Source: Octopus bimaculoides (taxonomy: Eukaryota). From it: DNA of 64,000 bases. Location of the stretch: the NCBI RefSeq assembly GCF_001194135.2, contig NC_069001.1, positions 36,977,754 through 37,041,753 on the forward strand, given 5' to 3'. A model generated the notes under the pieces. It did not search any database and was not told where the DNA came from. It saw only the letters and a program-made list of their open reading frames with translations. This document shows, one piece after another, positions 1 through 64,000 of this stretch (its first letter is position 1; each line of letters opens with the position of its first letter). Made by a program: the position numbers and the translations under genes.

Positions 1-434
1 GGCCTGCAAGAGCCCTGTGCCAGTGCCATGTAAAAAGCACCCAGCACACTCTGTAAATATGTTGACATTAGGAAGGGCATCCAGCCATAGAAACCATGCC
101 AAAAAGGACAATTGGGGCCTGGTGCAGCTCTGATCAAACCACCCAAACCATGCCAGCATGGAAAACAGACATTAAATGATGATGATGTAGCAAGATTCAA
201 AAGCAAGTCATCAAATTATGAAGTTATGACAAAACATAAAGTCATTACACAACAATGGTTTGTTCACCTGAGAGGCCAGTTTATCAGCCAAGCAACAGCC
301 AGACATCACATGATAGATCAATCTAGATCCTTCTGGAACTTTTCCCTACAAGCATTATAGTGCCAATTTAAACTCTCTGACACGAATATTTTGACACAGA
401 AAGCCCTAAATATAAGTCTTATAAATATGAAAGA

Positions 435-3553: not shown

Positions 3554-3805
3554 ATGGCGAACGTGAACGATGAGATCAAAAGCCTCACTTATTTTAACGT
3601 CCGACCAGTCATACTTCGAGGGTTTGTGGGGCCTTTCTTAATTCTGTACATCTGTTGGTTTTATCTCTGGATCGTGGTGTATGGAGTCGAAGAATATTTC
3701 GACGCTGGTATTATTGCCGTCGGTATAATCGTGTTTGTACACACCCTCACAGGCCTGTTTTGTGTTTGGTCCGTTCACGTCCAATGTGCACTCACTTGTA
3801 CTTCG
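3554..3805 (+). CDS. ATP13A1: ATP13A1 exon 1 (N-terminal TMa/TMb)
   Basis: ATG 3554; MANVNDEIK...[16 protein letters not shown]; donor gtaagt at 3806; phase 0. Confidence 0.9.
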
Positions 3806-3984
3806 GTAAGTTTTACACCTTCCCATACAAAAGGGGGGGGGGATATTTCTGTTGATCAATTAATCAATATTAATTCGCATGAATGATACTAAACTTTTGT
3901 CTTTTTATCGAACTTTTTACTCCATGTACATGTATTTATTGACTTACAGAAATTACAGAGGCAAAATCGAAAGATTACACATTA

Positions 3985-4020
<36 letters not shown>

Positions 4021-4517
4021 NNNNNNNNNNNNNNNNNNNNNNNNNNNNNNNNNNNNNNNNNNNNNNNNNNNNNNNNNNNNNNNNNNNNNNNNNNNNNNNN
4101 NNNNNNNNNNNNNNNNNNNNNNNNNNNNNNNNNNNNNNNNNNNNNNNNNNNNNNNNNNNNNNNNNNNNNNNNNNNNNNNNNNNNNNNNNNNNNNNNNNNN
4201 NNNNNNNNNNNNNNNNNNNNNNNNNNNNNNNNNNNNNNNNNNNNNNNNNNNNNNNNNNNNNNNNNNNNNNNNNNNNNNNNNNNNNNNNNNNNNNNNNNNN
4301 NNNNNNNNNNNNNNNNNNNNNNNNNNNNNNNNNNNNNNNNNNNNNNNNNNNNNNNNNNNNNNNNNNNNNNNNNNNNNNNNNNNNNNNNNNNNNNNNNNNN
4401 NNNNNNNNNNNNNNNNNNNNNNNNTCTGGTGCTGCACCGGTTCTTTCTCATCTTATCCACACCCACGACAATGAGAGAAGTCGAACTCAGCTGGTTTTGA
4501 AATCCTATAACACACAT

Positions 4518-19700: not shown

Positions 19701-21686
19701 CTTTGCCAGGCCTACATGTTGGGTACACTTAATGTGTCACCCAGTTTAATACCACCACCACCTGGTCCCTGGGTATCTTTACAGGCCTGCTCGCTTGTAA
19801 ATAGTCAGACCAAGCATTCTGTTGAAGGATAACTCTCTCCTGTCTTCTTGCTGGTCTCAGAGACCCTTAAAAAGAGTCATGAGCTCTGCTTTTCCCTGTT
19901 GACTCAGCGATAAAATACAAAAAAGAAGTACCTTGCAGTTTTGAGTTACAGCCTTTACATTCTAAGTTCAAATCCTGCTTAGGTCAACTTTATCCTTCAT
20001 CCATCTTGAACAATCGATAATATAAAGTACCAGTCAAACACTAATGGTCAGTTTAAATGACTTTCTCATTCCCACCAAAATTTCCAGCCTCATACATATA
20101 CACACACATATGCACAATCATCATCATCATGTCCACTCTTCCATGCTAGTATGGGTCAGATGGAATTTATTGAGGCAGATTTTCAATGGCCAATGCTCAC
20201 CTTTCTCCAAGTGAGATAATATTTCCCCATGGCTAGACATATTGTCTTGAGAGTGTGTGGGAGATTGGAAATAAATGACACCACTTGCATGACTGTGACA
20301 CTTGTTTACAACTATTCCTAAACACATTGCCACAGGCGTGTGTGTGTGTGTGTGTGTGTTTATATGTATGAAGGGCTGCTGCTAAGATCCTGGCTTTGGC
20401 TAAGAGAAAATACAGGAGGATTTTATTCAACATATCCCCCTCTCGGGTTTAAAAACTTATTGCAGCAGTCTTTCAGTTTTTCTAAGCCCTGTAAAAGAAC
20501 CAGGCCTTTTGTGATATCCTTAAAGCCAGGAACTTTACAAATCCACTCAAAAGACTTTGATCAATCTGTGGCTGTAAAACACACTTGCCCACTGTGCCAT
20601 GCAGTGGGACTGAACCAGGACCCATGTGGTTGGAAAGCAAACTTCTTAACCACATATCCACATCTGCACTTATCACGCACAGTATGATTTTTCAAACAAC
20701 TAAATACATTGAGCAATTTTTTTTTATTTTCTTTTATGTATTCATAATGAAATATCATCTTCTTTTCCAAAGTTCTCTTTTTCTCTCTGTTGTGTCCATC
20801 TTCTGTAGGTGGTTATGATTACTGGGGACAACCCATTAACAGCTTGCCACGTCGCTCAAGAGTTGAGAATCACTCAAAGTGAACACACACTCGTACTACA
20901 ACCTCCCAACGTTCACTGTAAGTTGTTTTTTGGTTTGGAGGATTTTTCATCTCAAAATGTTTGGGGGGTTTTTTTGTTTGTTTTTTTTTCTGTAGGGATG
21001 GGTGATTAAACTAAATTTACAATTTTTTTTTCAGTAATTGTTTTTAATAACGGGTCATCCCAATTAGGCTAGCAATTACTAATTGAATATAAAGTAATTA
21101 AGAATAGCAATTTTATTATTTTTAAATATATTTGTCTTCATTACATTTCAATCAGTTTGGTCTGATTGTCACAAGGAGTTCTGTTCCTGAATAAATAATG
21201 TATATATATATATATATATGTATATATCATCATCATCATCGTTTAACATCCATTTTCCATGCTGGCATGGGTTGAACGGTTTCACTGAAGTCTGGAGAGA
21301 CAGCGGCTGTACCAGGATCCAATCTGATCTGGCAATGTTTCTACAGCTGGATGCCCTTCCTAACACCAACCATTCCAAGAGTGTAGTGGGTGTTTTTTAC
21401 ATGCCACCAGCACAGGAGCCAGTTCGGATAGTGCTTTTTACGTTCTGCTGGCATGGGGGCCAGTCAGGGGGTACTGGCATCGGCCACATTTGGATGGTGC
21501 TTTTTACATGCCACCGGTACAGGAGCCAGTCAGGCAGACCTGTCATTGGCCACATTCGGATGGTGCTTTTTACATACCACCAGCGCGGGAGCCAGTCAGT
21601 GGGCACTGACCACAGCTACAATATTGGTTTTACTTCTCAAGCATATCATTTCGCACAATGCATCAGGGGTATTCTTAACTGGACTG

Positions 21687-27700: not shown

Positions 27701-29768
27701 TCTTCCAAATTCACTCACTCGGTATTAGTCACTCAGGGCTAGAATGGAAAAACACTTTCCTAAGGTGCCATGTGGTGGCACTGAACCCAGAACCATTGTG
27801 GTTGCAAACTTCTTAACTACACAGCAATGCAGCTTTCTGTTTTAGTCAGCAGTTCTTCCACATTGTCTAAAACTGCTCATGTTTTTATGTAAGGATTGAA
27901 TAATTTCTGGGGGGTTTTTTTTTTCTTTTTTCCCCTTAGTTTGCCATATCATCAAACAAGGGCGTTGCACTTTGGTTACAACATTGCAGATGTTCAAGAT
28001 TTTAGCCCTTAGTGCTTTGATATTGGCCTACAGCCAGAGTGTGCTATACCTGGATGGTGTGAAATTCAGTGACAGTCAACAAACAATACAAGGACTATTA
28101 TTAGCTGGTTGTTTTCTCTTTAATTCCAGGTCGAAGGTAAGTCTGTTTGTTGCGTTTCCGAGATATATATATATCCTTTCGTTTTACAGTAGTTGGTTAT
28201 TTGCCTGGCTTTTAGTAGGCAAAGATCTTTTTTGGAGGATTGTCTCTGTAAATATCATACAAGGATTGATTCAGATCTTTTATGGTATTCGTACATTTAT
28301 CAAAACTATCATCTGTGATGGTAAAGTGAAACAGTTGCAACTGGAAATTGAAACCTGAACATTTCTCTTTTGTATGTGGTATATATGATCAGATTGGAGC
28401 CTGGTGCAGCCATCCGGTTCACCAGTCCTCAGTCAAATCGTCCAACCCATGCTAGCATGGAAAGTGGACATTAAACGATGATGATGATGATATATAATGT
28501 GTTTATTATCAGCTCTTCCTCTTCCCCACCCCCCATGTGTCATGCCAACAGGCATTGGCAATCATGATTTTTCTTGGGAAAGACACAAGGTCATCTTACC
28601 TTCTGCCAGTTTATTTGCACTTAACTCTGTTAATCTCTTCTTCTCTTACACTTAACCTTGAGGCACAGAGCTTATTTGACACTTAGAGGGAACTGGTTCA
28701 CATGCCCCCCCCCCCCCGGGCATGTACACACATCAAAGGGCTTGTTTAGCCCATATCTAGGAGCCAGTTTTTCTTCTAGACCTATTTTCCTTAATCACAG
28801 GACCATCTTCTGCTATTAGCTCCATAACAGGGGTCCTTGACAGATACTCCTGTCCCGGATCAGAACAGACCTGGAAATAGTAATGACTAAGGGCTGGTTC
28901 CATATTACCCCCAAACTCCCAAACCAAAGCCTCACCACTGACTGTAGTTTAATGTCTTCTCCAAGACATTGTTAACTTGGTTTCAAATTTTGGTACAAGG
29001 CTAGCAAGTTCCAGTCATGAGAGTTAGTCAATTACACCAACCTCAGCGCTCAACTGGTACTTATTTTATCAACCCCAAAAGGATGAAAGGCAAATTCAAC
29101 TGCACGAGGAATTTGAACTTGGAACATGAAGACAGGTGAAATGCCGCTAAGCATTTTTCCCAGCATGCTAACCATTCTGCCAGTGCGTCCCCTTAAATAT
29201 TGTTACTATTGACTGTTATTAATATCATGTTTCTTTTCTTTGGTCTCTCTTTTTAACCTTTTGCTCTCTCCGTCTCTTTGCCAGCCTTTACGTACATTAT
29301 CAAAAGAACGGCCTTTACCTAATATATTCAATATTTACACCATCTTAACGGTGCTGGGACAGTTTGTAGTCCATTTTACAAGTTTGGTATACTTGGTTAG
29401 AGACGCCAGAGTTCGCTCAGGATACGAGTAAGTAGTTCTTGTTTTTGTTTGTTTATTTGTTTATGTTTTAGCTTTTTGGTACCAACCTACTTGAGACTGA
29501 TTCCTGGTTCTTTGATACAAACTTCATGTTTTAAAGCAATCTAAAGTAAATCCTTCCGCCAAAATTTCATTTCTAAGTTATGTTCCAAACATCTGTTTGA
29601 CCCTTTAGCATTCAGATTGTTCTGTCAAATGTAATGTTTATATAATCAAATTGTTTTGAATTAATCATGCATTACATTGTAGCATTAAAATTTCAATGAT
29701 GTCATTGTTTATTCTTGTCAAGCCATCTAATCTGTGCTAGCATGGAAAACAAATGTTAAATGATGATG

Positions 29769-32449: not shown

Positions 32450-32941
32450 NNNNNNNNNNNNNNNNNNNNNNNNNNNNNNNNNNNNNNNNNNNNNNNNNNN
32501 NNNNNNNNNNNNNNNNNNNNNNNNNNNNNNNNNNNNNNNNNNNNNNNNNNNNNNNNNNNNNNNNNNNNNNNNNNNNNNNNNNNNNNNNNNNNNNNNNNNN
32601 NNNNNNNNNNNNNNNNNNNNNNNNNNNNNNNNNNNNNNNNNNNNNNNNNNNNNNNNNNNNNNNNNNNNNNNNNNNNNNNNNNNNNNNNNNNNNNNNNNNN
32701 NNNNNNNNNNNNNNNNNNNNNNNNNNNNNNNNNNNNNNNNNNNNNNNNNNNNNNNNNNNNNNNNNNNNNNNNNNNNNNNNNNNNNNNNNNNNNNNNNNNN
32801 NNNNNNNNNNNNNNNNNNNNNNNNNNNNNNNNNNNNNNNNNNNNNNNNNNNNNNNNNNNNNNNNNNNNNNNNNNNNNNNNNNNNNNNNNNNNNNNNNNNN
32901 NNNNNNNNNNNNNNNNNNNNNNNNNNNNNNNNNNNNNNNNN
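32450..32941. other. Assembly gap, probably hiding the ATP13A1 terminal exon
   Basis: N run. Other gaps: 4021-4424, 12707-12731, 30270-30368, 35460-35558, 37431-38069, 49617-50589, 51458-51660, 53172-53800, 55462-56426. Confidence 0.6.
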
Positions 32942-35425
32942 TGATCTTTTTTTCTCTTTCTCTCTCTCTCTCTCTCACTCTCATCACATCTGATCTCATG
33001 TATTCCAATCATTGATTTGAAAACTGTTGGCGCTGCCAGCCACCATTCTTTTCTTGTCATTCTTACTTATTCCAAAAACATTGACATTAATTCTAAAGAA
33101 AAAAAAAAGAAAAAAGAGACAATCCTGCAGTAAATGCATACAAACGCTGCATGTACAAAAAAAATGTGAAAACGGGGGGGTTCTGTTCTTACATAGTTCT
33201 TTTTTTTTTTTTCCATACTGTATATTAAAAAAAAAAAATTGTTTTTTCACTCAAAATTTCTACTACAACCAAACCTTTTAAATATTTCTTTCAACTTAAA
33301 GATATTGAAAAGCAAAAAAAGAAACAAAAATAGCAAAAAATATTTCTTGAATATTTATTTCTTTTAATTTAACAATTTTTATGGCGAAGAAAAAAATTTT
33401 CATTTTATTTTTTAAAAAAGTCCTAATTTTATTAATTTTTCTTCTGCAAACATAATAATAACTTTAGATTTAAATTTAAAAGTTAATAACAGTTTAAATA
33501 TTTATATAAAGTTAATTTTGAATTTCTATTAATGCATTTTTCTAGACAGTCACAGAAGTGAAAAAATATATATATAATTCACTATTAAGGTTGTTGATAA
33601 TGGGATAAATAATTCATTAATCTATAACGAAGATTAAAAAAGAAAAAAGATCGGAATGGTTTGCTTATATGTATATATATATATGTATGTATGTATGTAT
33701 GTACATCTATATATATATACAAGTATATACATACATGCCATTTCCTCACCTCCCTCCCCAAATATGAGATGATACCTTTTTAAATATTATTTTTTTAAAA
33801 TTTTTAAACTATTCCCATGATGATAATTAATTGTACAACTGTGAACTAGCTGCTCCAAAGAGACATATCTGAACTTGTTGTACCTAACCAGTAAACGCAG
33901 ACCATTTTCCTGAAGTAGTAACCTGATGACTTCTTGTTAGAATCTCTTCAATAAAATGATCGTTGCCAAATTGATTGGAACTGGATGTATGTGTTTTTGT
34001 TGTTTGTATTTTGATTTTCTTTTAACTCCATGTTGAAGAATTATTTAAATGGTATCTTAAAAAGGAATATTTATTAATTATATATACACACATACACACA
34101 CCTACATTTATCCTACATAATTGGCCCTCCATCAGTTATAACGATGAGTGTTCCAGCTGATTCAATCAATGAAACAGCCTGCTTATGAAATTAATGTGCA
34201 AGTGGCTGAGTACTCCACAGACACATCTACCCTTCATGTAGTTCTCAAGGAGATTCAGCTTAATGCAGAACGTTGATGCAGCTGGCCCCTTTGAATTACA
34301 GGTACAACTCAATTTTTTCCAGCTGAGTGAACTAGAGCAACTTGAGATAAAAAGCCTTGCTCAAGGGCACAACACACTAGCGGGGAACCTAACTCATGAC
34401 ATTACAATTGTTCGCTGAATGCCCTAACCATTAAGCCACTCACCTTCACTATATCATACACACTAAAGTGGTTGATGTTAGGAAGGGCATCCAGACATAG
34501 AAACAGGCCAAATTAGACTGAAACCTGGTACAGCTCTCTCCTGCTTGACAACTCTGGTCAAATCAACTTACTCATGCCTGCATGGAAAACAGACGGTCAA
34601 GGATGATGATAACAATGACCACACATATAAACACTTCTATTTGCTTTGGCAAGTGGGCTGTGGACATGCTGGGGTAAAATAAATCTCAAAATTATATATT
34701 CATTTTTACAGCTGCCCCAGGAGCATTTTTCAGTGCTCTTTATATTTTGTTTTTCAGTGATTCTATAGGATAGCCAGAAATTATTTAGTTTGTCAAAAAC
34801 TATCATTTCTTTAGGTTTGTATGATTTCAACACTGGAGATCACAATCATACATAAATTCATTTTTTTCTTCAAAATTTGAATTGAAAAATATTTTTGGGA
34901 TTTAATTCATCTTTCTTTCCATAACTTTGCATTTTAATTTGTTTGAAGCTTCACATTTTTTTAAACGTGACAGATTGAAAAATTATGCAACAATAAAATT
35001 TTCACAAATAGTTTTGTTTCAAAATTTCTTTTTTATGGAAGTGAGTGGAAGCAGGGGTTAAAATTTTGGAAAAAAATTTTATTTATTTTTACAGAATTGT
35101 AATCTCTGATGTTTAAAAATATATAAATATAAAAAAAAGTACAATGGTTGGCAAATTAAATAATTTCCTACTCTATTGTTTAAGATTACCCCTGTTTTCT
35201 ACCTCTTAGTATAACAGAAGAGCTGGGTAAGCTGAAAAAATAATCCCTTTTTTTTTTCAACTATTTTTCCAAAGAATTTTAACATGTAGCCCAGAAATTT
35301 CATTCCAAAGAAATCTGTAATAGATCTATAACCGTATATACATATATATATTACATGTATGAGTGTGTATATTGCGTATATTGCGTGTATATATATATAT
35401 ATAAAATGTATGTATGTGTGTGTGC

Positions 35426-37377: not shown

Positions 37378-37430
<53 letters not shown>

Positions 37431-38069
37431 NNNNNNNNNNNNNNNNNNNNNNNNNNNNNNNNNNNNNNNNNNNNNNNNNNNNNNNNNNNNNNNNNNNNNN
37501 NNNNNNNNNNNNNNNNNNNNNNNNNNNNNNNNNNNNNNNNNNNNNNNNNNNNNNNNNNNNNNNNNNNNNNNNNNNNNNNNNNNNNNNNNNNNNNNNNNNN
37601 NNNNNNNNNNNNNNNNNNNNNNNNNNNNNNNNNNNNNNNNNNNNNNNNNNNNNNNNNNNNNNNNNNNNNNNNNNNNNNNNNNNNNNNNNNNNNNNNNNNN
37701 NNNNNNNNNNNNNNNNNNNNNNNNNNNNNNNNNNNNNNNNNNNNNNNNNNNNNNNNNNNNNNNNNNNNNNNNNNNNNNNNNNNNNNNNNNNNNNNNNNNN
37801 NNNNNNNNNNNNNNNNNNNNNNNNNNNNNNNNNNNNNNNNNNNNNNNNNNNNNNNNNNNNNNNNNNNNNNNNNNNNNNNNNNNNNNNNNNNNNNNNNNNN
37901 NNNNNNNNNNNNNNNNNNNNNNNNNNNNNNNNNNNNNNNNNNNNNNNNNNNNNNNNNNNNNNNNNNNNNNNNNNNNNNNNNNNNNNNNNNNNNNNNNNNN
38001 NNNNNNNNNNNNNNNNNNNNNNNNNNNNNNNNNNNNNNNNNNNNNNNNNNNNNNNNNNNNNNNNNNNNN

Positions 38070-38118
<49 letters not shown>

Positions 38119-38765: not shown

Positions 38766-40330
38766 ATGGAGGTACAGGCGCAGCAGCCCAGAGAAGACAT
38801 GGAAGCTTTGAGAAGGTTGATTCAAGTTCAAATTTCCGAAAAGTATTCTAGTCCAAGTTCCCGTCTTACAACTTCTTCAACTGCTATCCTACCATTTGCT
38901 GCTCTTGATTAAACATCAGAATTGTGGCCTGATTGCTGGTCAAGATTCTGCATTTATGTTGAGACCAACACCAAGCCTGACCAGCTCAAAGCTCAAGTTT
39001 TCGTGACGAATCAAACCGCTGACTGGCGAATCTGGCAACGCAATAGAGTCCGCCCAAGGATATTAATGAGTTGATGATGGAGGAAATTGTCAACTTTATG
39101 AAAGAACAATTCGACCCCAAACGTTTCGTTGTGCGAGAACGTTTCAAGTTCTGGAGTAACAGGCAACGGAAGCCAGGCAAAACACTCCAGTAACTGGAAG
39201 CGCATACGTCAAGACGCTGCTACCTGTGACTTTCCTTCGATCACAGACCCTCAAGATGAAGCTCATAGACAGAGATTCATGTATTATGTCAACAATAAAG
39301 CTGTTTTGAAGGCTCTTTTCAAGATCAAGGACACAGAGCTGAACATTGCCCTTGCTGTCCAAGTCGTAATTGAGACCAAAGACACGGCGAAGGCTGCCAA
39401 GGAAACTGTTTACGGTTCCAGGCCTGTCATCAAGATCAAGCAGAGACAGAACAAGGGTCAACGAAAAACCACCAACAGTCTAATTCTACAGACCCTGAAT
39501 TGAAGTGTTACAGATGTGGAAAGGCCCATAAAGTGGCAGACTGCCCCTACAAAGAAGTCAAATGCCACTTTTGTGACAAGAAAGGACATTTGAAAGCTGT
39601 TTGTAAGAAGAAGCAACGGGAACATCGTTCTCAACCTTCCGCAAAAAGAATCATGAAAGCAGAACTCGTGAAAACAATGCTCGGCGAAGTTCCCGACGAT
39701 ACTTTTAGAGTAGTTGCGCCAATCACAATCCAGGACCGACAGCTCACGATGGAACTGAACACTGCAACTATGGGAAATTTGGTTTCTTTGCTGGTCCAGA
39801 AACAATTAGGAAAACCGAAGCTGGATAATGTCAGACTTCGCTACAAGTCTGCCAGCAAGCATGACCTACCCGTGCTGGGAACTTTTATGGGCCAAACCAA
39901 GACGCTGAGAATCTCCGTGGATAATGCTCTTGAACTGAGATGCATAGAGAGTCGAGACAAGTGTAAAGGTGTAAGAACATTGCGTCCTAAGACCTCTAAC
40001 CAGCCTTATGCTTCCCTCAGCACTCAGTACCCCTGCAGCAACGACTCCCATTTAGAATTAAGTTAGCACCTGGTTATTTCCAGGAGATTATGGAAATCCT
40101 AACCAGTGATCTGCCTGGGGTTGCCGTCTTCCAAGACGATATGCTCGTCAGCGGGCAAGACACCAATGACCACTTGAGCAACCCGAGGCGTTTGCTCTCT
40201 CGTCTAAACGACAAAGGACTCAGATGCCGTCGTGAAAAGTGTTTAGGAAAGAGTCTAGATAAGATCCAGTGATAACTAAAGTGATGCGTTCTGTCTGCGA
40301 AGGGTGAAGTACACTGAGACCAACGATGAA
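38766..40330 (+). mobile_element. Gypsy (Mag-like) LTR retrotransposon, internally deleted and degenerate
   Basis: gag with two knuckles CYRCGKAHKVADC and CHFCDKKGHLKAVC; protease-like ELNTA; RT GVAVFQDDMLVSG (FQDD 40129-40140); frameshifts. Confidence 0.88.
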
Positions 40331-43329: not shown

Positions 43330-43580
43330 TTTTCTACTACTTCGCCATCGCCGACATTACTAACTACTAATATTGCTAACGACTACTATTAAAGCCACCA
43401 TTACCACCGCATCTTCTGCTGCCTATTAATACTGCTAAGTCCACCACCACCACCATCACTACTACTATACTAGTGCTACCACCATCATCACCACTTCTAC
43501 TAACACGACCGCTATCACCACCACTTCTAACCATTCATACTGCCACTACTATAGTCACTTACCACTCCTACTACTACTCA
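43330..43580. repeat. ACT/ACC trinucleotide low-complexity tract
   Basis: Degenerate (ACT)n/(ACC)n, directly visible. Confidence 0.85.
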
Positions 43581-46500: not shown

Positions 46501-47524
46501 ATTTAACAGCAATATATTTTTTATAATGATTGATTCAAGGAAATATGAAATTCGGAATAGCATTCCCATCCCACATGGAAAACCGAAAAAGGGTGGGGCT
46601 TTTCCCTTTATTTTGCAGAGTTGTGGTAGGCAATAAATACTTCTGTTCTCGATCTCCGAACTTTTTCGACCCCAAAAGGTGTATGGGACTTCGGAACAAC
46701 CTGCCTGTCTAAATACCAAGAGTTATGGAACAGACTTTCAGGATGGAAAATACTTAATAACGGCATTGTTTATCTAGTTAATTGATGGGTTAAATTACCC
46801 ATCTTCACAAAAGCTGTTAAGAAAAACCGGGTTGTACCGAACCATCTTTAGTCTGAAGGTTTTTCAAATAAAGAGACTTCAGACGGTTAACAAGCGACGT
46901 TTAGCTGTTACCGCCAGTTGACAGAGCCCAAATAGCCGTACTAGACATAGCAGCCTAATGTTACCGCAATTCCATAGCACCTAAAATTTTCGTTGACAAA
47001 GATATTACTTAACCCAGTAATATACATAGATCTTAGCATGGCGACGCAAATTAGATGGACTAGGCTATCACTGCCTTATGAAGGGACACGGCATTAGCTA
47101 AATCTTGGTGCGAAATATCCCATCACGACAAACGATTCACTAATAAATCATGTAAGTGGTAAAAATCTGCCTAAGTGCCAGGGCTGCATTTGCCCCTAAG
47201 TGCCAACTAGGTATGACCGAAAACTTGTTCACAAGACCTGAAATATTAAGATTGGGAGGTGGACAAAAGCCAGGAAGGAGAACACGAAATCGCATGCGAA
47301 AACCTGACTCAACATCGAAAGATAAACGACATTGGTAAACAGGAGACAAATAAATTAGATGCAAACAAACAGAAAACTAGTAATGGGGGGAATAGAAAAC
47401 GAACGAATAATGACCGAAGCTAACGAGGTAGACAAATAAAAATGAAGAAATTGTGAAAGAAAACTCTTGCGAGGGAGAAAGGCATATCGTGACCGCCCTA
47501 AAATGACTATCAAGAGGGAATAAT

Positions 47525-47540
47525 GGCCCTAAAAAGGGCC
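47525..47540 (-). terminator. Histone 3' stem-loop of H1-a
   Basis: Minus strand CTCAAA-GGCCCT-TTTT-AGGGCC-ATTA, 35 nt after the stop; 6-bp stem, 4-nt loop. Confidence 0.95.
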
Positions 47541-47575
47541 TTTGAGTTATGGAAAATAAAAATGCTTGGGTCAAT

Positions 47576-48118
47576 TTACTTCTTAGCAGCGGATTTCTTG
47601 GCAGGTTTGGTTTTCTTAACTGCAGACTTCTTTGCGGCAGCTTTCTTGACAGGCTTCTTCTTAGCTGGTGCTTTCTTAACTACTGGCTTCTTTTTAGCTG
47701 GCGACTTGGTACCCTTGGGTTTTGCGGGTTTTTTAGCGGCACTACTTTTCTTTTTAGCGGCACCAGTTTTCTTGGTAGCGGTTGTCTTCTTCTTGGGAGC
47801 GGACTTCTTCTTAGCACCTCCCTTGGGCTTCCCAACTTTCTTAACCTTGTCGGATTTAGCTAACTTGAAAGAACCAGAAGCTCCGGAGCCTTTAGTCTGG
47901 ACCAGGGAACCGCTCTGAACACCGTGTTTCAACGAAAGCCTCAAGTTGCTCAGGAACTGAGTGTTATTTTCGACGTTGTTGTTTGTCAGTATGTACTTTG
48001 CAATAGCGGCTCTCGAGCTACCGTTCCTCTCCTTAAGACTTGTTATGGCTGCTTTAATCATCTCCTTGAATTTGGGATGTTTAGCTGGTGATCTCTTCTT
48101 AGCAACTTTCTCAGTCAT
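47576..48118 (-). CDS. Linker histone H1 (here H1-a), 180 aa, intronless
   Basis: Winged-helix globular domain HPKFKEMIKAAI...GSSRAAIAKYI...QTKGSGASGSFKL, then a K/A/P-rich tail; upstream TATA and downstream histone stem-loop. Confidence 0.97.
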   Translation of the reverse strand: MTEKVAKKRSPAKHPKFKEMIKAAITSLKERNGSSRAAIAKYILTNNNVENNTQFLSNLRLSLKHGVQSGSLVQTKGSGASGSFKLAKSDKVKKVGKPKGGAKKKSAPKKKTTATKKTGAAKKKSSAAKKPAKPKGTKSPAKKKPVVKKAPAKKKPVKKAAAKKSAVKKTKPAKKSAAKK

Positions 48119-48210: not shown

Positions 48211-48305
48211 ATTTATAGCAAACGCGCCGACGTAGTAGAAGTCACCCGGTCGCTGTTGATATGCACAACGTTAACAGTGAACGTTTTCAATGAGATGTGT
48301 TTACC
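48211..48305 (-). promoter_or_regulatory. H1-a core promoter: H1-box, conserved proximal element, TATA
   Basis: Minus strand GGTAAACACAT (48305-48295), TCTACTACGTCGG (48239-48227), TATAAAT (48217-48211). Confidence 0.85.
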
Positions 48306-50608
48306 AGCCTTACAAAATTAACAAGTTCGGAAATTAAAATGTATCTTTATTCGGCAATTTTTTGACAAAATAAAAGAAAACACTTTGTTCTATCATTCTA
48401 TGTGTTTTCCCAAGTTTTTATAAGACGAATTATAGTTAGAAAGCATTTTATATGTTGACAACTCATACTGTACACAACATGATTACTTGTAAAATTTTAA
48501 ATAAAATTCCATAATTTATTCAAAAGTATACATTTTTCATGTCCAGAAATTAAGATGACATCCTATTCTAAATATTCGTAATATAATTTTGAAAAAATAA
48601 GTTTTTTTTTAGATGATATCGGCGTTTGTATTTGAGCAGGTAACACACGTCAAAGTTACGGTTGCAGCCATCAACAATCGTAAGCAACATATTGGAAAGT
48701 TTTGTTTGGATGTAAATAAAAATAAAATATTATTGCCAAATAATACAATATATATTGTAAATCGAATCATTGTCATAGTTGTGTTTTGATTTTAGTGTTT
48801 AATTATTAGATTAATTTATATAAGTTTATTTTGCCGCGTTTTCGGCAGGTAGTTTAACTCGCATAATCTTTCTTTCAGTCAAGAAATTAATTGCTAACTG
48901 AATACTTAAGAAGGCACATCAAAATATTAATTAAAAGCTAATAAATTAATTATTGAACAATTTAATTAAGAATTCGCTAACTTCGTGTTGCGAAGATAAG
49001 AGGGCTAGCAATATAAATACTGTTCTTTTTAATGAGTTAATTGAAATAAAATATTTAACAACAAAATATCATAATCTAATTTACAATTATGAAACAGCAT
49101 AAAACATCGAAAATATTAAAATATCAAACATAAAGGCGAAATGTTAAAAACTTTATTGCATTAATTATTAACTTGACTCCTATTTGGTAATTTAAAATAC
49201 TTTTTTAAAATAAAAGATTCTTAAGATATAATTATATATTTTAAGACCGATTTTCTTGAAACTGTTGAAAACTTTTTGCCAATTTAATCTTTTCACATTT
49301 ATGGAGAGATATACCATTTTTACTATAATTATTAGTGAAAATATATTTTCAATATAGCTACAAACGAAAATATTTTAATTGTACATGAAAAATCCATCAC
49401 AATAAAAGTTTTTTTAGATTAGTAATACTATGCTTATGAATTTACACGTATGCATGTGTAGGAGTGCGTGCGTGTATGCATGTATGTATGTATGTATGTA
49501 TGTATGTATGTATGTATGTATGTATGTATGTATGTACGAGAGGTGCTGTAAAGTTCCTGGCTTTGGGTAAAAGAAAATACAGGAGGATCAGTTAATTATG
49601 ATTTTATTTAGCATATNNNNNNNNNNNNNNNNNNNNNNNNNNNNNNNNNNNNNNNNNNNNNNNNNNNNNNNNNNNNNNNNNNNNNNNNNNNNNNNNNNNN
49701 NNNNNNNNNNNNNNNNNNNNNNNNNNNNNNNNNNNNNNNNNNNNNNNNNNNNNNNNNNNNNNNNNNNNNNNNNNNNNNNNNNNNNNNNNNNNNNNNNNNN
49801 NNNNNNNNNNNNNNNNNNNNNNNNNNNNNNNNNNNNNNNNNNNNNNNNNNNNNNNNNNNNNNNNNNNNNNNNNNNNNNNNNNNNNNNNNNNNNNNNNNNN
49901 NNNNNNNNNNNNNNNNNNNNNNNNNNNNNNNNNNNNNNNNNNNNNNNNNNNNNNNNNNNNNNNNNNNNNNNNNNNNNNNNNNNNNNNNNNNNNNNNNNNN
50001 NNNNNNNNNNNNNNNNNNNNNNNNNNNNNNNNNNNNNNNNNNNNNNNNNNNNNNNNNNNNNNNNNNNNNNNNNNNNNNNNNNNNNNNNNNNNNNNNNNNN
50101 NNNNNNNNNNNNNNNNNNNNNNNNNNNNNNNNNNNNNNNNNNNNNNNNNNNNNNNNNNNNNNNNNNNNNNNNNNNNNNNNNNNNNNNNNNNNNNNNNNNN
50201 NNNNNNNNNNNNNNNNNNNNNNNNNNNNNNNNNNNNNNNNNNNNNNNNNNNNNNNNNNNNNNNNNNNNNNNNNNNNNNNNNNNNNNNNNNNNNNNNNNNN
50301 NNNNNNNNNNNNNNNNNNNNNNNNNNNNNNNNNNNNNNNNNNNNNNNNNNNNNNNNNNNNNNNNNNNNNNNNNNNNNNNNNNNNNNNNNNNNNNNNNNNN
50401 NNNNNNNNNNNNNNNNNNNNNNNNNNNNNNNNNNNNNNNNNNNNNNNNNNNNNNNNNNNNNNNNNNNNNNNNNNNNNNNNNNNNNNNNNNNNNNNNNNNN
50501 NNNNNNNNNNNNNNNNNNNNNNNNNNNNNNNNNNNNNNNNNNNNNNNNNNNNNNNNNNNNNNNNNNNNNNNNNNNNNNNNNNNNNNNNNTATATATATAT
50601 ATATATAT

Positions 50609-52440: not shown

Positions 52441-55121
52441 TATATATATAGTTATATGTATGTACTATGTACGTATGTATGTATATTTCTTTGTTGCCCA
52501 CAGGGGGCTAAACATAGAGGGGACAAACAAGGACAGGCAAAGAGATTAGGTCGATTACATGAACTCCAGTGCGTAACTGGTACTTATTTAATCGACCCCG
52601 AAAGGATGAAAGGCATAGTCAACCTCAGCGGAATTTGAACTCAGACGAAATACCGCTAAGCATGTCGCCCGACATGCTAAGTACGTATGCATGTACACAA
52701 ACTCGCACACACATACGTACACACGTATGCTTAGCAGGTATGCAAATCCGTAAATTTTATGCGGATTGCTAATCGTGCAAAAAATAAACATTTATTCTAT
52801 TGTGCTTTCAATTTTCAATCATTTTTTTACTTTTCGTTTGAAAAGGAAGGTGTGGCTGGAGAAGAGATGTCTGTCGGAGTGTACGTTCCAAAAGAGATGG
52901 ACGCATGTTGCACGAGTGTTGTGCGTGCAAGGAACCGTGTGAATAGACGGGGGTAAAAAAGAGAACATAAAAGATACCAGCGATAGATCGGGGCTTGTGG
53001 GGTCGAAGCGTGGCCTGATCATCGCTTCATTTGTATTGTTAATTTCATTCGATTTAATTTCTAAAAGTCATATTTTATGTAAAATCATATTGATTTACTG
53101 ATCCCCTCAGTTGTTTTGTCCATTTCTATGTTTAGCCCCTGGTGGGCAATAAAGAAATTGGTATTTCGACTNNNNNNNNNNNNNNNNNNNNNNNNNNNNN
53201 NNNNNNNNNNNNNNNNNNNNNNNNNNNNNNNNNNNNNNNNNNNNNNNNNNNNNNNNNNNNNNNNNNNNNNNNNNNNNNNNNNNNNNNNNNNNNNNNNNNN
53301 NNNNNNNNNNNNNNNNNNNNNNNNNNNNNNNNNNNNNNNNNNNNNNNNNNNNNNNNNNNNNNNNNNNNNNNNNNNNNNNNNNNNNNNNNNNNNNNNNNNN
53401 NNNNNNNNNNNNNNNNNNNNNNNNNNNNNNNNNNNNNNNNNNNNNNNNNNNNNNNNNNNNNNNNNNNNNNNNNNNNNNNNNNNNNNNNNNNNNNNNNNNN
53501 NNNNNNNNNNNNNNNNNNNNNNNNNNNNNNNNNNNNNNNNNNNNNNNNNNNNNNNNNNNNNNNNNNNNNNNNNNNNNNNNNNNNNNNNNNNNNNNNNNNN
53601 NNNNNNNNNNNNNNNNNNNNNNNNNNNNNNNNNNNNNNNNNNNNNNNNNNNNNNNNNNNNNNNNNNNNNNNNNNNNNNNNNNNNNNNNNNNNNNNNNNNN
53701 NNNNNNNNNNNNNNNNNNNNNNNNNNNNNNNNNNNNNNNNNNNNNNNNNNNNNNNNNNNNNNNNNNNNNNNNNNNNNNNNNNNNNNNNNNNNNNNNNNNN
53801 AAAAAAAAAAAAAAAAAAAAAAAATAGATAGGAAAAAATGGGTGGGTGTGCACACACATACTTACTAAAATATGGGTATGGATATATGCATATAATTATA
53901 TATTATTTATGTTATGATATGATCGAACGCCACGCATTGCCTCCAAGTAAGTTGTCTTTCTATCTGCATGTCTATCTGTCTATCTACCTACCTACCTGTC
54001 TGTATGTATCTCTAACTATCTATCTGTCTGTCTGCATGTGTGTCTATCTATCTATCTATCTATCTATCATCATCATTATCGTTTCACGTCCGTTTTCCAT
54101 GCTGGCATGTTATTAATTTTAAAGTAAAGCATGTTTATTCACACGTTTTTGAATCCATCTTGCATTGTTTTGTAACTTTGAGATTTTGATGAATTAACTG
54201 TTTCTTTTTTAGAATGATATTGTATGGTTTGTGTGCAAAACCAGATCTGACCAGTTTGAACATAAAACAGGTAGAATATTTTGGCTGGATATGGCCAGTT
54301 TAAATGAGCAGTAGATTCATATGGATGGTTTCTCATATTCTGTAGTATATTATAATCCACCACTGGACAGGATGCCAGTCTGTCGTAGGAAGTAACTTGC
54401 CTACATGTTCATCACATATGTACCAGCATCCACACATACCCATACATAGACAAAAACACAAACACACACATGCACACACATATAAATATAATGTATAAAA
54501 TATATAATGTTTGTGTGTGTGAATAGGTAAGTACATATAAAGATAGACAGACAGACAGACAATATATATATCTAGCTATTAAAATGCTATTCGATTTGAC
54601 TGAAAAATGTCCGTAAGTGGAATTAGTATGAAAAGCAGTCATAAAGAGATTTCATTGGACATTAAATTTCACAAAGTTTTGATGTGGGGAAAAAAAACCC
54701 AAGCATATTGTAAAAACGTCTACTGTGGGAACAATTTATGATAAAATTAGATTCAGCATACAAGCAATTACTCTGTTAACTGTATAGACTTTATTTTTTG
54801 CATAGATCCAATGTGATCTTTAAAATGAACGAAACACCCATGTTTACAGGGATGAATTATTGAAACCCCAAATAATTTCTCTCAACACATGGCTATGATG
54901 CTTCCCCACTACTTCTGCTTATGATCAGAGATGCACATATTGTCATGCACTAAGGTACATGCTCAACCAGTTATGGTCAAGTAAGTCACAAGCAAATCCG
55001 TGGTATTGAGCAGAAAATTTGCTGTATCCTGTATTTTGTACCGAGAGAAAACACGAACATGTGAACGCTTCCAATCACTCAGAAGCCATGAGAGGGATGG
55101 CCTTGTATTGCATCAGGTCAT

Positions 55122-56684
55122 TTATTATTATTATTATTATTCAGTAGTTTTATTTTTATAACGTGCTTTCACTTCACTACCGAGCGCAGCTCTGTGCGCC
55201 TTGGGTATGTGCTGTGGTTTGCTGTGGTGCTCTTATGTTTACTGTATTGAAAGTGTTTTGCGTAGAATGTGTGCAGTACCCAGTAGTGCAATTTTCTGTA
55301 TGTTATATATATTTGTAAGTCCTGGTGTTTTTGTTATGTATTTGTCTGAATATTTTTTTATTATACCTAAGGCACCTACTATGATAGGAATTGTTTCTGT
55401 TTTTAGATTCCACATTCGAGTTATCTCTATTTCCAGGTCTTTGTATTTTGAAAGTTTTTCCNNNNNNNNNNNNNNNNNNNNNNNNNNNNNNNNNNNNNNN
55501 NNNNNNNNNNNNNNNNNNNNNNNNNNNNNNNNNNNNNNNNNNNNNNNNNNNNNNNNNNNNNNNNNNNNNNNNNNNNNNNNNNNNNNNNNNNNNNNNNNNN
55601 NNNNNNNNNNNNNNNNNNNNNNNNNNNNNNNNNNNNNNNNNNNNNNNNNNNNNNNNNNNNNNNNNNNNNNNNNNNNNNNNNNNNNNNNNNNNNNNNNNNN
55701 NNNNNNNNNNNNNNNNNNNNNNNNNNNNNNNNNNNNNNNNNNNNNNNNNNNNNNNNNNNNNNNNNNNNNNNNNNNNNNNNNNNNNNNNNNNNNNNNNNNN
55801 NNNNNNNNNNNNNNNNNNNNNNNNNNNNNNNNNNNNNNNNNNNNNNNNNNNNNNNNNNNNNNNNNNNNNNNNNNNNNNNNNNNNNNNNNNNNNNNNNNNN
55901 NNNNNNNNNNNNNNNNNNNNNNNNNNNNNNNNNNNNNNNNNNNNNNNNNNNNNNNNNNNNNNNNNNNNNNNNNNNNNNNNNNNNNNNNNNNNNNNNNNNN
56001 NNNNNNNNNNNNNNNNNNNNNNNNNNNNNNNNNNNNNNNNNNNNNNNNNNNNNNNNNNNNNNNNNNNNNNNNNNNNNNNNNNNNNNNNNNNNNNNNNNNN
56101 NNNNNNNNNNNNNNNNNNNNNNNNNNNNNNNNNNNNNNNNNNNNNNNNNNNNNNNNNNNNNNNNNNNNNNNNNNNNNNNNNNNNNNNNNNNNNNNNNNNN
56201 NNNNNNNNNNNNNNNNNNNNNNNNNNNNNNNNNNNNNNNNNNNNNNNNNNNNNNNNNNNNNNNNNNNNNNNNNNNNNNNNNNNNNNNNNNNNNNNNNNNN
56301 NNNNNNNNNNNNNNNNNNNNNNNNNNNNNNNNNNNNNNNNNNNNNNNNNNNNNNNNNNNNNNNNNNNNNNNNNNNNNNNNNNNNNNNNNNNNNNNNNNNN
56401 NNNNNNNNNNNNNNNNNNNNNNNNNNTTATTTTTCTTGTTTTCCTGTCTATTTTACATAGTTCGTTTAGTGTCCAGTTAAGGATGTTGTAGCTGTAGCTT
56501 ATAACTGGGACAGCTAAAGTGTTGATACCCATTATCTTGTTTTTAGCATTGAGCTCTGTTTTTAGTATTGATCTAACTCGTCTATAGTACTCTTTCTTTA
56601 TTTTTTCTTTCATTTGTATATGTTGTATCCTATCTAGTTCATTGACTCCTAAATACTTATATGGTTGGCTTTCGTCTAGTTCTC

Positions 56685-58552: not shown

Positions 58553-59670
58553 ATGGGCCCCAACTATGCGAACCTGTTCGTTGGCTACGTTGAGGCCCAA
58601 ATATTCTCAATTTCATTGATCCCACTCCCGAACTATATGGTCGTTATGTTGACGACTGTATCGGTGAGACTTCACTCTCCCGCGAACATCTAGACTCCTT
58701 CCTCTCTTTTGTCAAATCTTTCCATCCTGCCCTCCACTTCTCCTGCACTATTTCCTACACTTCAGTCGCCTTTCTCAACATTTCGGTCAGCATTCATCAC
58801 TCCACTCTCACCACCCCTATCCACTACAAACACACACACTCACACCTCAACTTCTCCTCCCTCCCACCCTAAACACACCAAGCTCTCCATCCCCTATTCC
58901 CAATTCCTCTGTCTACACAGGCTCTGCAGTGACAACCATGACTTTGAGACAGTCTCAAATCATGACTCGCCACTTCATCCTACGTGAATATCTCCTCACC
59001 ACCATCCATACCACCCTTGCCAGAGCACTTCCGTGGTCCGTGCATCTGCTCTCTCCCCCCAGCACCCGCCCCGCCGTCACCCATCTCCCGTTTCCCCTCA
59101 CCTACCTACCCACCACCCTACCTCTCCAACGCACAATTCTCCGAGTCTTCCGGCGACTCCAGTCCGACCCCTCCACTTCGCACATCTTCCCAAACCGACC
59201 CCTCCTCTTCTTCAAACGAGCCCACAACTTACGAGACCTCTTGGTCCACAGCTTCTTTCCTAATCCAACCTCCGAACCCGGCTCGTTCCCCTGCTCCCGC
59301 CCACGCTGCCGCACTTGCCCCTACCTCTCCAACACCACCCTTCTCACAGGTACCCATCATCGACCCTATCATATCACTGACTCCTTCACCTGCATTTTTA
59401 ACAACGTCATCTACTGCATCTCCTGCTCTCTCTGTCCTTTTCTATACATCGGTCAAATGGGACGCCACTTGGCTGACTGGTTCGTAGAAGACCTCCGAGA
59501 TAATAGACTCGGCAACGACACCCCGGTCTCGTGCCATTTCCGCTCTACCAGTTTTTCTTTACAACTTGCACGGGGGCCATCCGGACTCCCGTCTTCGCCG
59601 TGAACAGGGATTAGTCTTCTCTCTTCGCTCTTTTGCCACATGGGCTCAACTCTCCTTCCCTTTTCATCTA
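58553..59670 (+). mobile_element. Penelope-like element (RT plus GIY-YIG), degenerate
   Basis: MGPNYANLFVGYVE...GRYVDDC; linker CSRPRCRTC; NVIYCISCSLCPFLYIGQ.GR. Confidence 0.9.
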
Positions 59671-60359
59671 ACCCTCCCCCTCTCTTCCTATCACACCTAC
59701 TTCCTCCCACCCACCTCTCCTCCCTTGCCTTGACACCTACTTCACCTCTTCACTCCTACCCACCCTGTAGACACCAATCCTCTCCCTGCCTCACCCGACA
59801 CGGAAGAAATGAGCACATGCACACAGGAGCCCCAAATTTCTCAACCCCTGCCCTGTAAGGGAAGAAAAGGGAAAAAGTACATCGTTCTTTACGATGAAGC
59901 AAATACCAAACTATTTAATGAAATTCCTTGTTCGGACAAGCCAATATATGTGAGCCCGTATCTTTGCGAGAAAGTGTCCCAGAATCTGGGTTGTATCATA
60001 GTCGACCCTATGCATGAGGAGAGCATTAAATACGCGGAAAATAATTTCGATACCAGTGAGATGCCTACAACAGTGAATCCATTCAAATTGAAACAAGACT
60101 TTAATATTGACATTTTACAATGTTTAACTTCAAACATTTTTTTGACAAAAAAGAAAAAAAGTATGATTGTATAGGTTAAATGAAGGCGCCCGCCCGGATG
60201 TGGGGTCGAATGTCATTATTTCATTACTCATTTTATTTTATTTTTATCTATCTTTTCATTCGTTTTTTGTGTCCCCACTTTCATTGTACCGTTCTGTTTG
60301 TTTATATATTGTCCCCTCTATGTTTAGTCGTCTACGGGTAATAAAGAAAAAAGTTGTTA

Positions 60360-60670
60360 CAATCATCTGAAATTGTGATGATATTCGATATTCAAGCAAT
60401 TTTGCAATTCAACTTCAAAAAAGGACGTAAAGCAGCTGAAACTGCTGGCGATATCAACGAAACGTTTGGTGAGGAAATGACCAGCGAGTGGTCAGCTCGG
60501 AAATGGTTTAAACGATTTCGCAGTGGAGACCTGAGCCTTGAAGATCGTGAGCGCAGTGGACGTTCATCTGTCATCGATGGCGATCAATTGAAGACCGTCA
60601 TTGAGAAAGATCCACGTAAAACCACTCGAGAACTGGAACTAGAACTTCAAGTTAGCCAGAAAAAATTGGC
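60360..60670 (+). mobile_element. Mariner transposase N-terminal (HTH) fragment
   Basis: ILQFNFKKGRKAAETAGDINETFG...RKWFKRFRSGDLSLEDRERSGR...IEKDPRKTTREL. Confidence 0.9.
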
Positions 60671-61108
60671 TATTGCAGTTAGGGTTAGCGTTAGGACTCC
60701 GAGAACAATAGAAACCAACTTAATCCTTCAGTAAGCCAGAAATAGCACTCAAATCTCTCTTCAAATACCCTACAGAGATTATTAAAAAGGGGAGGAAGGA
60801 CACAAATAATGTAACACTAGATACCTGTAAAAAGAGGTACGTTCACAGTGGAGTTGACCTACAGCTGAACATCATCTGAATGGAACTTAGCCTTTCCTTA
60901 TGACGCTCCGAGACGATTATTTTTAAAACACATGGTTAAGGGAATTTTTAAAAATTAAATACTCCCTGTTTACTTCATTTGAATATATCAACCGAATTTT
61001 AAAGTTTTTTTTAATGAAAAAAAGATATTTCAGAGTCTCTGTCCTAAAAACACCTGAATTTCTAATATTCTGTCAAAATTGTTGTACAGTACTATACAAA
61101 AGTTTTCT

Positions 61109-62056: not shown

Positions 62057-62151
62057 GGTAAACACATAAAATATGAGAAAATCAAAGCGGTTAGTGTCCC
62101 TGGTTTGTGAAATGAGTGTCGTCTACTACGTCGGTGCCTCCGCTATAAATA
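62057..62151 (+). promoter_or_regulatory. H1-b core promoter: H1-box, conserved proximal element, TATA
   Basis: GGTAAACACAT 62057-62067, TCTACTACGTCGG 62122-62134, TATAAATA 62144-62151. Confidence 0.85.
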
Positions 62152-62240
62152 CGGCTGACTTCTCTCGAAGCAGGCACACCAGTGTTGTTGATACAAGTCA
62201 TTTTACTGCTGTTGTTATCAATTTATTTTCTTTAATCATC

Positions 62241-62768
62241 ATGAGCGACTCTACTAAAAGCAAGTCTACTAAGCCTAAGGCTCCTCCTAGCCATCCCAAA
62301 TACAGCGAGATGGTTGCCAGCGCTATCAAATCCCTGAATCAAAAAGGTGGTTCGTCTAAAGCTGCTATCATGAAGTACATTACCGCCAATTACAAAGTTG
62401 GAAACAATACTCCCCGGGTCAACGGTAACGTCAAACTTACTCTGAGACAAGGTGTCCTGAAGCACATTCTTGCCCAAACAAAAGGTGTTGGTGCCACCGG
62501 TTCTTTCAAACTCCGCAAGACTGCAGCCAAAGGCGAGAAGAAACAGAAGAAGGTGAAGAGGCCCGCCAAGGTCGGCAAAAAACCTGTTACTAAGAAGAAC
62601 AAATCTGCGAAACCTAAGAAACTAGCACCAAAGTCTGCCAAATCTCCTAAATCCGCTAAATCCAGGGTAGTTAAACCCCAAAAGGTTGCCGCCAAGAAGT
62701 CAGCGAAGAAAGTGACGAAGAAGAAAGCTGTTAAGAAACCAACTACAAAGAAAGCTACCAAAAAGTAA
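62241..62768 (+). CDS. Linker histone H1 (here H1-b), 175 aa, intronless
   Basis: MSDSTKSK...HPKYSEMVASAIKSL...GSSKAAIMKYITANYKVGNN...QTKGVGATGSFKL, then a K-rich tail. Start placed at 62241 rather than 62073 because the TATA box lies at 62144. Confidence 0.96.
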   Translation: MSDSTKSKSTKPKAPPSHPKYSEMVASAIKSLNQKGGSSKAAIMKYITANYKVGNNTPRVNGNVKLTLRQGVLKHILAQTKGVGATGSFKLRKTAAKGEKKQKKVKRPAKVGKKPVTKKNKSAKPKKLAPKSAKSPKSAKSRVVKPQKVAAKKSAKKVTKKKAVKKPTTKKATKK

Positions 62769-62795
62769 ATTATTAATTTTGAAAAGCTTTCAAAG

Positions 62796-62811
62796 GGCCC
62801 TTTTTAGGGCC
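62796..62811 (+). terminator. Histone 3' stem-loop of H1-b
   Basis: CAAAG-GGCCCT-TTTT-AGGGCC-ACCAA, 27 nt after the stop; the 16-mer is identical to that of H1-a. Confidence 0.95.
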
Positions 62812-64000
62812 ACCAACAGGTTTCGATTGTGTATGAATCGACTTCAATACGCGATTTTGTGTGGGTTCGTTTTTTAGATCCTTCTTCCGTAATGTCTTGG
62901 ATAATCGTTAGCTATAACGGTTTTGTGGAGAAATGGCGGCAAGGGCCATTGAAACTTTTCGTTGGTCATCCCTAAGGTTTGCAAGATTTTTTTGTTTAGT
63001 ACCTTGTATTTGAGTTTGGAAGGCTAGATGAAAGAAGTCCCCAATTTAGTTTTACTCTTATAATATGAAAATCGATAGTTTCATGACTGAATACATATGC
63101 GATGGCTATGAGCAAGTTATGGCGCTAGGACTGAAAAAAGATTAGATTTTATCAACATAATCGCTATCTATACGCTGGAAAACGTATTTTTGCTAAATTC
63201 TATTTAAGGCCTTGGCAATAACTGCATTTAGATGCATCAGTATGTTTGCCGCTTAATTTGAAACGTTTTCCATGTAGATTTTTTTAAAAATTGCAAGGAG
63301 TTTCGAACCGTCTTTTTATTACCATTTTCCGTAAATTTAGCACTTCCTTGTTTTTTGGAGATCTTTGTAAGATAACTGTTCGATTATTTTCATAATTTGC
63401 ATGTGCAATAAGTTACTGAATGGGTGAGAGGGTAGGGATTTATTTTTTCTAAGTTGTTAATGGTTCAATAAATTCATACAACCCCGATCGGTGGGTAACA
63501 TTCCTTCATTTTTTATACACTTGACGTATTCGCAAGGTGCCAGTGTTGTTTACATGATTGAATACTTGTGCACAAAAGGAAAAATTCATCAACGCCTTCG
63601 AAATATTTGCTATTTTATTTAAAAACTGCTTTATTAAAAGCCTGTTAACCTGCCACTGGGTCTGCTAGAAACAGCAGCACAACTTCCTTCAAATTACTAA
63701 CAATTTTACCTACATTCGATGGTCATGGCTAAGATAGGTTTGACCAATGAGGTTGATCTAAACAAGTCTTGCAGTTTCATTTGTCGTGAGTGAATTTTCT
63801 ATTTTCAATAAACTAATAATCCTGATCTGCAAGGCAGCCGACATTACTACAAATCTAGGAATGTCGCCCGCCTTTTTCGACACTGGTTACCGATCGCAAA
63901 CAAATTCCGGCTGTTGCTGGCGGATTTGTATTTTAAGCGGGCAATGGGCCTCTTAGATGTTATTTTTTTTTAATGAAATTTTGCTGAAGTACGTTTCCAA

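Follow-up and report, generated by a model that had tools for sequence, protein, structure and literature searches.

A promoter element shared by two divergent octopus linker-histone genes is probably an octopod form of the H4 box

Two linker-histone genes of Octopus bimaculoides share a short promoter sequence that is very probably a homologue of the histone H4 box. We consider it likely that this sequence belongs, as the octopod representative, to the known H4-box family and that no new cephalopod-specific element is present. The genes lie in a window of 64,000 nucleotides, the whole stretch of DNA analysed here (CM046621.1, assembly GCA_001194135.2, around 37.0 Mb). Each has a standard promoter of H1-box, H4-box and TATA box, and therefore no new regulatory element is needed. 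The original prediction was of an unnamed cephalopod- or mollusc-specific element bound by an unknown factor. This was not supported, as the element matches the H4-box slot, the register of a chiton H4 box and a matrix built from non-cephalopod promoters, and so corresponds to a histone element that had already been described. What led the prediction astray was its reliance on the pentamer GGTCC to define the H4 box.

The two genes, H1-a on the minus strand and H1-b on the plus strand, are solitary, divergent and 14 kb apart. The coding sequence of H1-a spans 47576..48118 (-; 180 aa) and that of H1-b, which has PF00538 relatives, 62241..62768 (+; 175 aa, ATG at 62241). Their globular domains are 54% identical, close to the ~55% originally estimated. 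Histone 3′ stem-loops (Rfam RF00032) follow both genes, at 47500..47545 (-) for H1-a (27.6 bits, E 3.5e-6) and at 62791..62835 (+) for H1-b (27.4 bits, E 4.2e-6), the hairpin of the latter, GGCCCTTTTTAGGGCC, occupying 62796-62811 (+). These matches, at ~27 bits and a local E of ~4e-6, lie below the gathering score of 34; Rfam gave no match in the window at the gathering threshold and the stem-loops surface only at the E-value threshold. As both genes end in a histone stem-loop, they are replication-dependent by 3′ end type. The window holds neither a core histone gene nor a remnant of a third H1, and core histone genes were also absent within 10 kb of the octopod H1 genes in the loci that were fetched. 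Assembly gaps account for 4,528 N bases of the window and are mostly bordered by (TA)n/(TATG)n-type microsatellites (for example 4000-4430, 32450-32950, 37430-38080, 49620-50600, 53170-53800 and 55460-56440); both H1 genes and their promoters are untouched by them.

The shared module begins with an H1-box, GGTAAACACAT, which is exact in both genes (62057..62067, + in H1-b; 48295..48305, - in H1-a). Its AAACACA heptamer (62060-62066 in H1-b) precedes the TATA box by 84 nt in H1-b and by 85 nt in H1-a, within the range of ~80-100 nt expected of an H1-box. The TATA box reads TATAAAT in both promoters (62144..62150, +; 48211..48217, -), with TAT..A conserved in the octopod alignment, and lies 97 and 99 nt from the ATG, respectively. 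Between the two is the H4-box-like element, GTCTACTACGTCGGTGCCT in H1-b (62121..62139, +; core CGTCGG at 62129-62134) and TTCTACTACGTCGGCGCGT in H1-a (48222..48240, -; core CGTCGG at 48232-48227 on the minus strand). The distance from the start of the core to the TATA box is 15 nt in both genes, and that from AAACACA to the core is 69-70 nt.

Alignment of 62116-62150 (H1-b) with 48245-48211 on the minus strand (H1-a) gives 29 identities in 35 positions without gaps, including an exact 13-mer, TCTACTACGTCGG, at 62122-62134 (+) and 48227-48239 (-). None of 1000 shuffles reached this identity (mean 21.2, maximum 26). The 13-mer was found with two or fewer mismatches at 3 sites in 64 kb, where 0.19 were expected. 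The third site, at 43333, was dismissed as a chance match, since the DNA around it is of low complexity, rich in ACT/ACC, and shows no trace of an H1 gene. All sequences, coordinates and spacings of the original prediction, including the upstream H1-box common to both genes, were correct on direct reading. Its statement that the interval between H1-box and TATA box holds neither CCAAT nor an H4 box was right in its first part, since CCAAT and ATTGG are absent from both genes here (62068-62143 and 48218-48294), but probably wrong in its second, as a likely counterpart of the H4 box occupies the slot. A further H1-box-like sequence, GGAAAACACAT, is present at 48400-48410 (-), 105 nt upstream of the H1-box of H1-a; its counterpart is kept as GGAAAAACACAT in O. 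sinensis (L008) and is degraded in Argonauta (L009).

The element is conserved in octopods. Eight promoters were compared: H1-a, H1-b and H1-c of O. bimaculoides, H1-a of O. sinensis, H1-a, H1-b and an H1-delta-like gene of Argonauta, and H1-b of an octopod from Logan. CT[AG]CTACGT[CT][CG]G was found in 8/8, separated from the TATA box by 7-9 nt, with flanks that could not be aligned, and an AAACACA-type H1-box lay further upstream in each. Invariant columns of the alignment fell in two blocks only, AA.CACAT and CT.CTACGT..G followed by TAT..A. The site reads TCTACTACGTCGGCGCG in O. sinensis H1-a (L008), identical to the window, CTGCTACGTCGGTGCG in H1-a of Argonauta hians (L009), CTGCTACGTTCGCAC in Argonauta H1-b (L004), CTGCTACGTCGGCGCG in H1-c, which lies on another O. 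bimaculoides chromosome (L007), and ACTACTACGTCCGCAC in two copies of the Argonauta H1-delta-like gene (L014, L015). In the Logan octopod (L005) it is TCTACTACGTCCGCGTC, where the site orthologous to that of window H1-b reads TCTACTACGTCCGCG. The H1-box of H1-a is likewise present in the O. sinensis and Argonauta orthologues, and an H1-box is conserved in chiton and scallop too.

Moreover, when 174.6 kb of octopod DNA were searched on both strands, every copy of CTACGT[CT][CG]G was at an H1 promoter and in the sense orientation (10/10), where composition alone predicts ~2.6 copies anywhere in that DNA. The element is thus not a member of a repeat family in this DNA. The second copy in L007 (16958) arose when the whole promoter was recently duplicated in tandem and is therefore not independent. 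This duplicate (L007:16760-17780) lies ~7 kb beyond the third H1 gene of O. bimaculoides, on its downstream side. It comprises promoter and 5′ UTR (H1-box, ACTACTACGTCGGTGCG, TATTTATAG), is broken by transposon-derived sequence and gives way to a remnant of an H1 C-terminal tail, a disrupted H1 pseudogene.

With H1-a and H1-b divergent neighbours only 14 kb apart, their shared block might be thought a non-functional remnant, left when one promoter was duplicated from the other or converted by it. However, a MAFFT alignment of the ~390 nt upstream regions showed no further conserved block, the UTRs do not align, and little more than half of the globular-domain residues are identical. Furthermore, Argonauta keeps the block, and so does the third paralog, which lies on another chromosome. 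A remnant is thus extremely improbable, and is already refuted by the conservation across species and paralogs. The original view that the block is under selection was borne out: it persists across three paralog lineages in Octopus and Argonauta whilst the surrounding DNA diverges.

An O. sinensis gene taken as an H1-b orthologue that lacks the motif (L003) was considered as counter-evidence and rejected, its similarity to H1-b being confined to the transcribed region. L003:9944-10574 (CM016862.1), annotated as histone H1-delta-like (P0002, 158 aa), is 86% identical to window 62175-62823, the match beginning ~31 nt past the TATA box of H1-b and ending just beyond the 3′ stem-loop; the DNA upstream is unrelated, and the gene lies on a different chromosome record from that of the O. 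sinensis H1-a orthologue. These features suggest that an H1-b mRNA was retrocopied to give a processed gene whose ORF is intact. The start of its similarity indirectly places the transcription start of H1-b near 62175 and so would give a 5′ UTR of 62175..62240 (+). Four other loci (L010-L013; Logan SRR23998829, SRR32993527 and others) encode an animal H1 (P0122) that is 63% identical to the globular domain of H1-a. Their promoter has AAACACA and CTTGTACGTCCGCAAACG, with no clear TATA box and TTCTAAAG in its place.

The probable identity of the element became apparent outside the cephalopods. In the chiton Liolophura sinensis (L016), an H1-H3 repeat carries two H1 genes, whose promoter contains AAACACA followed by TTTCTACGCGGTCCGCGCTCGCGGTATGTA, including a classical H4 box with a GGTCC core, TCTACGCGGTCCGCG. 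This chiton sequence and the octopod TCTACTACGTCCGCGTCTCCACTATAAAA have TCTAC, GTCCGCG and a 7-nt gap to the TATA box in common, such that chiton TCTACGCGGTCCGCG pairs in register with octopod TCTACTACGTCCGCG, and chiton GGTCCGCG with octopod CGTCCGCG. In the scallop Pecten maximus the H4-box slot holds GACGACGTTCGAGC, which scores poorly with the matrix described below (3.8 bits) and is therefore only a probable homologue.

An independent sample was drawn from 80 H1-encoding metagenome loci (L018-L097), giving 64 promoters after deduplication; many of these loci are complete histone clusters (H2A, H2B, H3, H4 and H1). The core [CG]GTCCG was found in the sense orientation at -160 to -60 from the ATG in 42/64 promoters, as CGTCCG in 34 and as GGTCCG in 8. 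Shuffled sequences gave a mean of 2.6 promoters and a maximum of 8, and the antisense orientation 2. Most promoters without the core have one-base variants in place (AGTCCG, GGGCCG, GGTTCG). The consensus for these invertebrate promoters is TCaATcACGTCCGCGCG, then 8-10 nt, then the TATA box. The core lies 41-79 nt from the H1-box (mode 59) and 15-23 nt from the TATA box (mode 19), with two exceptions at 35 and 37 nt. As GGTCCG makes up only 8/42 of the cores and CGTCCG 34/42, the pentamer defines the family poorly, and it is literally absent from both window elements. We also found no H4-box sequence printed in the articles that mention the H4 box.

A matrix of 19 columns was built from the 42 non-cephalopod H1 sites, selected on their core. 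Of 118,548 window positions it ranked the H1-a element first (16.1 bits, the next best scoring 8.9) and the H1-b element 12th (6.4 bits), a score lower than that of any training site (minimum 9.3). One base of the Octopus core CGTCGG conflicts with a matrix column in which the training sites never vary, although this uniformity exists by construction because those sites were selected on the core. The 5′ half of the element also differs, being TCTACTAC in the window and TCAATCAC in the general consensus.

These differences bear on the possibility that the sequence is, after all, a new cephalopod- or mollusc-specific H1 element unrelated to the H4 box and read by a lineage-specific factor of unknown identity. 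Its 5′ half, CT[AG]CTAC, is invariant in the eight octopod promoters, unlike the general TCAATCAC; the CGTCGG core is present in all three O. bimaculoides paralogs, as it is in O. sinensis H1-a and Argonauta H1-a; and the general matrix gives H1-b its low score. Set against this, the chiton H4 box is in register with identical TATA spacing, and a matrix made without cephalopods puts H1-a first in 64 kb. Moreover, the other octopod H1 genes have CGTCCG or CGTTCG, and the three cores interchange between close relatives and between paralogs and occur outside the named cephalopod genomes. The Octopus-type ACGTCGGCGCG, for instance, was found in the metagenome in an H4 promoter (L053) and in an H1 promoter (L046, reading CCACGTCGGCGCGC). 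Such interchange makes the variants look like tolerated variation at one site. A new element is therefore unlikely and the idea is already largely refuted.

We next consider the H4-box reading by promoter class. In the same metagenome clusters, under a stricter re-extraction, the core was present in 40/57 H1 promoters (70%) and 9/27 H4 promoters (33%), and in 0/26 H3 and 0/14 H2B promoters; one H2A promoter was recovered. It is from such a restriction that the H4 box takes its name. The sharing between H1 and H4 is thus seen in organisms other than octopus. Examples from H4 promoters are TTTCTATCAGGTCCGAT (L059), CAGACACGTCCGCGTG (L072) and TCAGTCACGTCGGCGCG (L053, with the Octopus-type core), the first of which we take to be very like the human H4 site II. 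The closest known system is the H4 box of the H1.0/H5 genes and invertebrate 'orphon' H1 genes, an element resembling histone H4 site II. The window elements agree with it in lying between H1-box and TATA box, with 15 nt from core start to TATA box and in the sense orientation only, in having a GC-rich 3′ flank, GCGCG, and in aligning in register with chiton GGTCCGCG. They differ from it in their core (CGTCGG against GGTCC) and in their 5′ half (TCTACTAC against a TCAATC-like sequence).

An H4 box may act in more than one way. It might work through an HBP1-like HMG-box protein and mark differentiation-type, replication-independent H1 genes, since HBP1 was isolated as the protein binding the H4 box of H1.0 and the vertebrate H4 box has been called unique to differentiation-dependent H1 genes (PMC6027317). 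For the H1.0 H4 box that review names HBP1 and not HINFP (see below), which speaks against HINFP as the factor. The octopod H1 genes are indeed solitary, with core histones absent within 10 kb. However, both window genes have the stem-loop of the replication-dependent 3′ end type, the element is common in metagenome H1 genes that sit inside H2A/H2B/H3/H4 clusters, and the TCAAT-like 5′ half, a possible target for an HMG box, is no longer present in octopods. This makes a role of that kind very unlikely. Vertebrate H1.0 is polyadenylated and in this respect, too, unlike the window genes with their stem-loop ends.

The vertebrate replication-dependent H1 promoter consists of an H1-box, a GC box, a CCAAT box and a TATA box. 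The window genes resemble it in their stem-loop 3′ end and in the distance of ~85 nt by which AAACACA precedes the TATA box, but differ in that the CCAAT slot is filled by the H4-box-like element. The 5′ half of the invertebrate consensus, TCAATCAC, presumably resembles the vertebrate H1-specific CCAAT box, CCAATCACAGCGCGC, and a single composite element may have diverged into the CCAAT box of vertebrates and the H4 box of invertebrates. An older idea holds that the H4 box is the ancestral proximal H1 element and that vertebrate replication-dependent H1 genes swapped in CCAAT. The prevalence of the H4 box in the metagenome sample, where it is the rule (~70%) among H1 genes that include members of five-histone clusters, fits this idea. 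The prevalent invertebrate core is CGTCCG, presumably the optimum for the zinc-finger protein HINFP, and not the textbook GGTCC; a scan for GGTCC alone misses most H4 boxes. This comparative result is of some interest to specialists in histone genes.

The H4 box was defined by its similarity to H4 site II (PMC6027317), and Drosophila Hinfp is cited as keeping up Histone1 expression (Nirala et al. 2021, as cited in PMC10513339). The prevalence of CGTCCG would fit a conserved link from HINFP to H1 of the kind reported in Drosophila. HINFP (HiNF-P/MIZF, 'histone H4 transcription factor') is the factor that acts at H4 site II. We assume its recognition site to be GCGGACGTT, with reverse complement AACGTCCGC (JASPAR MA0131). 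Against this presumed AACGTCCGC, the invertebrate CACGTCCGC matches at 8/9 positions, the octopod TACGTCCGC (L005, L014) at 8/9 and the window TACGTCGGC at 7/9; the L010 site also matches at 8/9. The window elements have a C-to-G change inside the core. Searches of the literature text for GCGGACGTT, CGGACGTT and AACGTCCGC returned primers only. Full-length HINFP orthologues, with 45-51% identity over the whole zinc-finger region, were found in bivalves (Saccostrea), gastropods (Littorina, Aplysia, Physella, Candidula), a brachiopod (Lingula), annelids, nemerteans, echinoderms and arthropods. No cephalopod entry was present among the 30 named clusters, and a word-indexed search listed vertebrates only; the octopus factor is thus inferred. 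On this basis we lean slightly towards HINFP as the factor on the octopus element.

In the mechanism we propose, the basal invertebrate H1 promoter would comprise an H1-box (AAACACA), ~60-70 nt, an H4-box, 7-10 nt and the TATA box, and the 13-mer TCTACTACGTCGG would be the octopod H4 box, an element resembling site II of histone H4. In octopods the 5′ half would have changed to CT[A/G]CTAC, and the core of Octopus is one base off, with CGTCGG for CGTCCG. The octopus orthologue of HINFP would bind this element beside TATA-bound TFIID and together with an H1-box-binding factor, and H1 transcription would be tied to S phase by HINFP and its NPAT-type co-activator. The change of core from CGTCCG to CGTCGG, together with the octopod-wide change of TCAATCAC to CT[A/G]CTAC, raises the prospect, an unlikely one, that an octopod HINFP, or a replacement for it, shifted its DNA specificity and that unlinked H1 promoters tracked it in concerted cis-trans co-evolution.

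A zinc-finger protein is not the only kind of factor that could be envisaged. The invariant octopod block contains TACGT, and the CACGTC of the general consensus is close to a half E-box/G-box or CRE, as if an ACGT-core site were read by a bZIP (CRE/ATF-like) or bHLH-type factor instead. However, conservation runs well 3′ of ACGT, through CCGCGCG, and the orientation is strict (42 sense against 2 antisense), unlike that of palindromic bZIP/bHLH sites. Moreover, the GGTCCG variants (8/42 and the chiton) contain no ACGT, and TGACG and CACGTG are absent from both window elements. A bZIP or bHLH site is therefore quite improbable.

Strong matrix matches in Argonauta L014 proved to be the heads of a SINE-like repeat and were rejected as promoters. 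The head reads (CAT)n-CTGTTTAACGTCCGCGTTCCAyGCCAGC... and is a perfect match to what we take to be the HINFP consensus. Copies are found at L014:15021-15180, at least 12 other places in L014, where the repeat is very dense, and L007:14278-14428. Since this octopod repeat carries a better HINFP match, TTTAACGTCCGCG, the core alone cannot give specificity, and the bare ACGTCCGCG core is not unique to octopod histone promoters. The window has two copies, at 69-187 (-) and 21226-21362 (+), which are old and CpG-decayed (TTTAATGTCTG, TTTAACATCCA).

Lastly, other features of the window were noted. A first exon of a P5A-type ATPase (ATP13A1-like) lies at 3554-3886 (+; Pfam PF23143, 2TM_P5A-ATPase, E 1.3e-26), and ORFs near 19074-19376 and 27972-28358 are, by eye, likely further exons of this gene, without a Pfam match. 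A Mos1/mariner-type transposase HTH domain (PF17906, E 5.5e-16) is found at 60354-60734 (+), ~1.3 kb upstream of the H1-box of H1-b, and further retroelement-like ORFs are at 39129-40066 (with a gag-like zinc knuckle, by eye) and 58929-59603.
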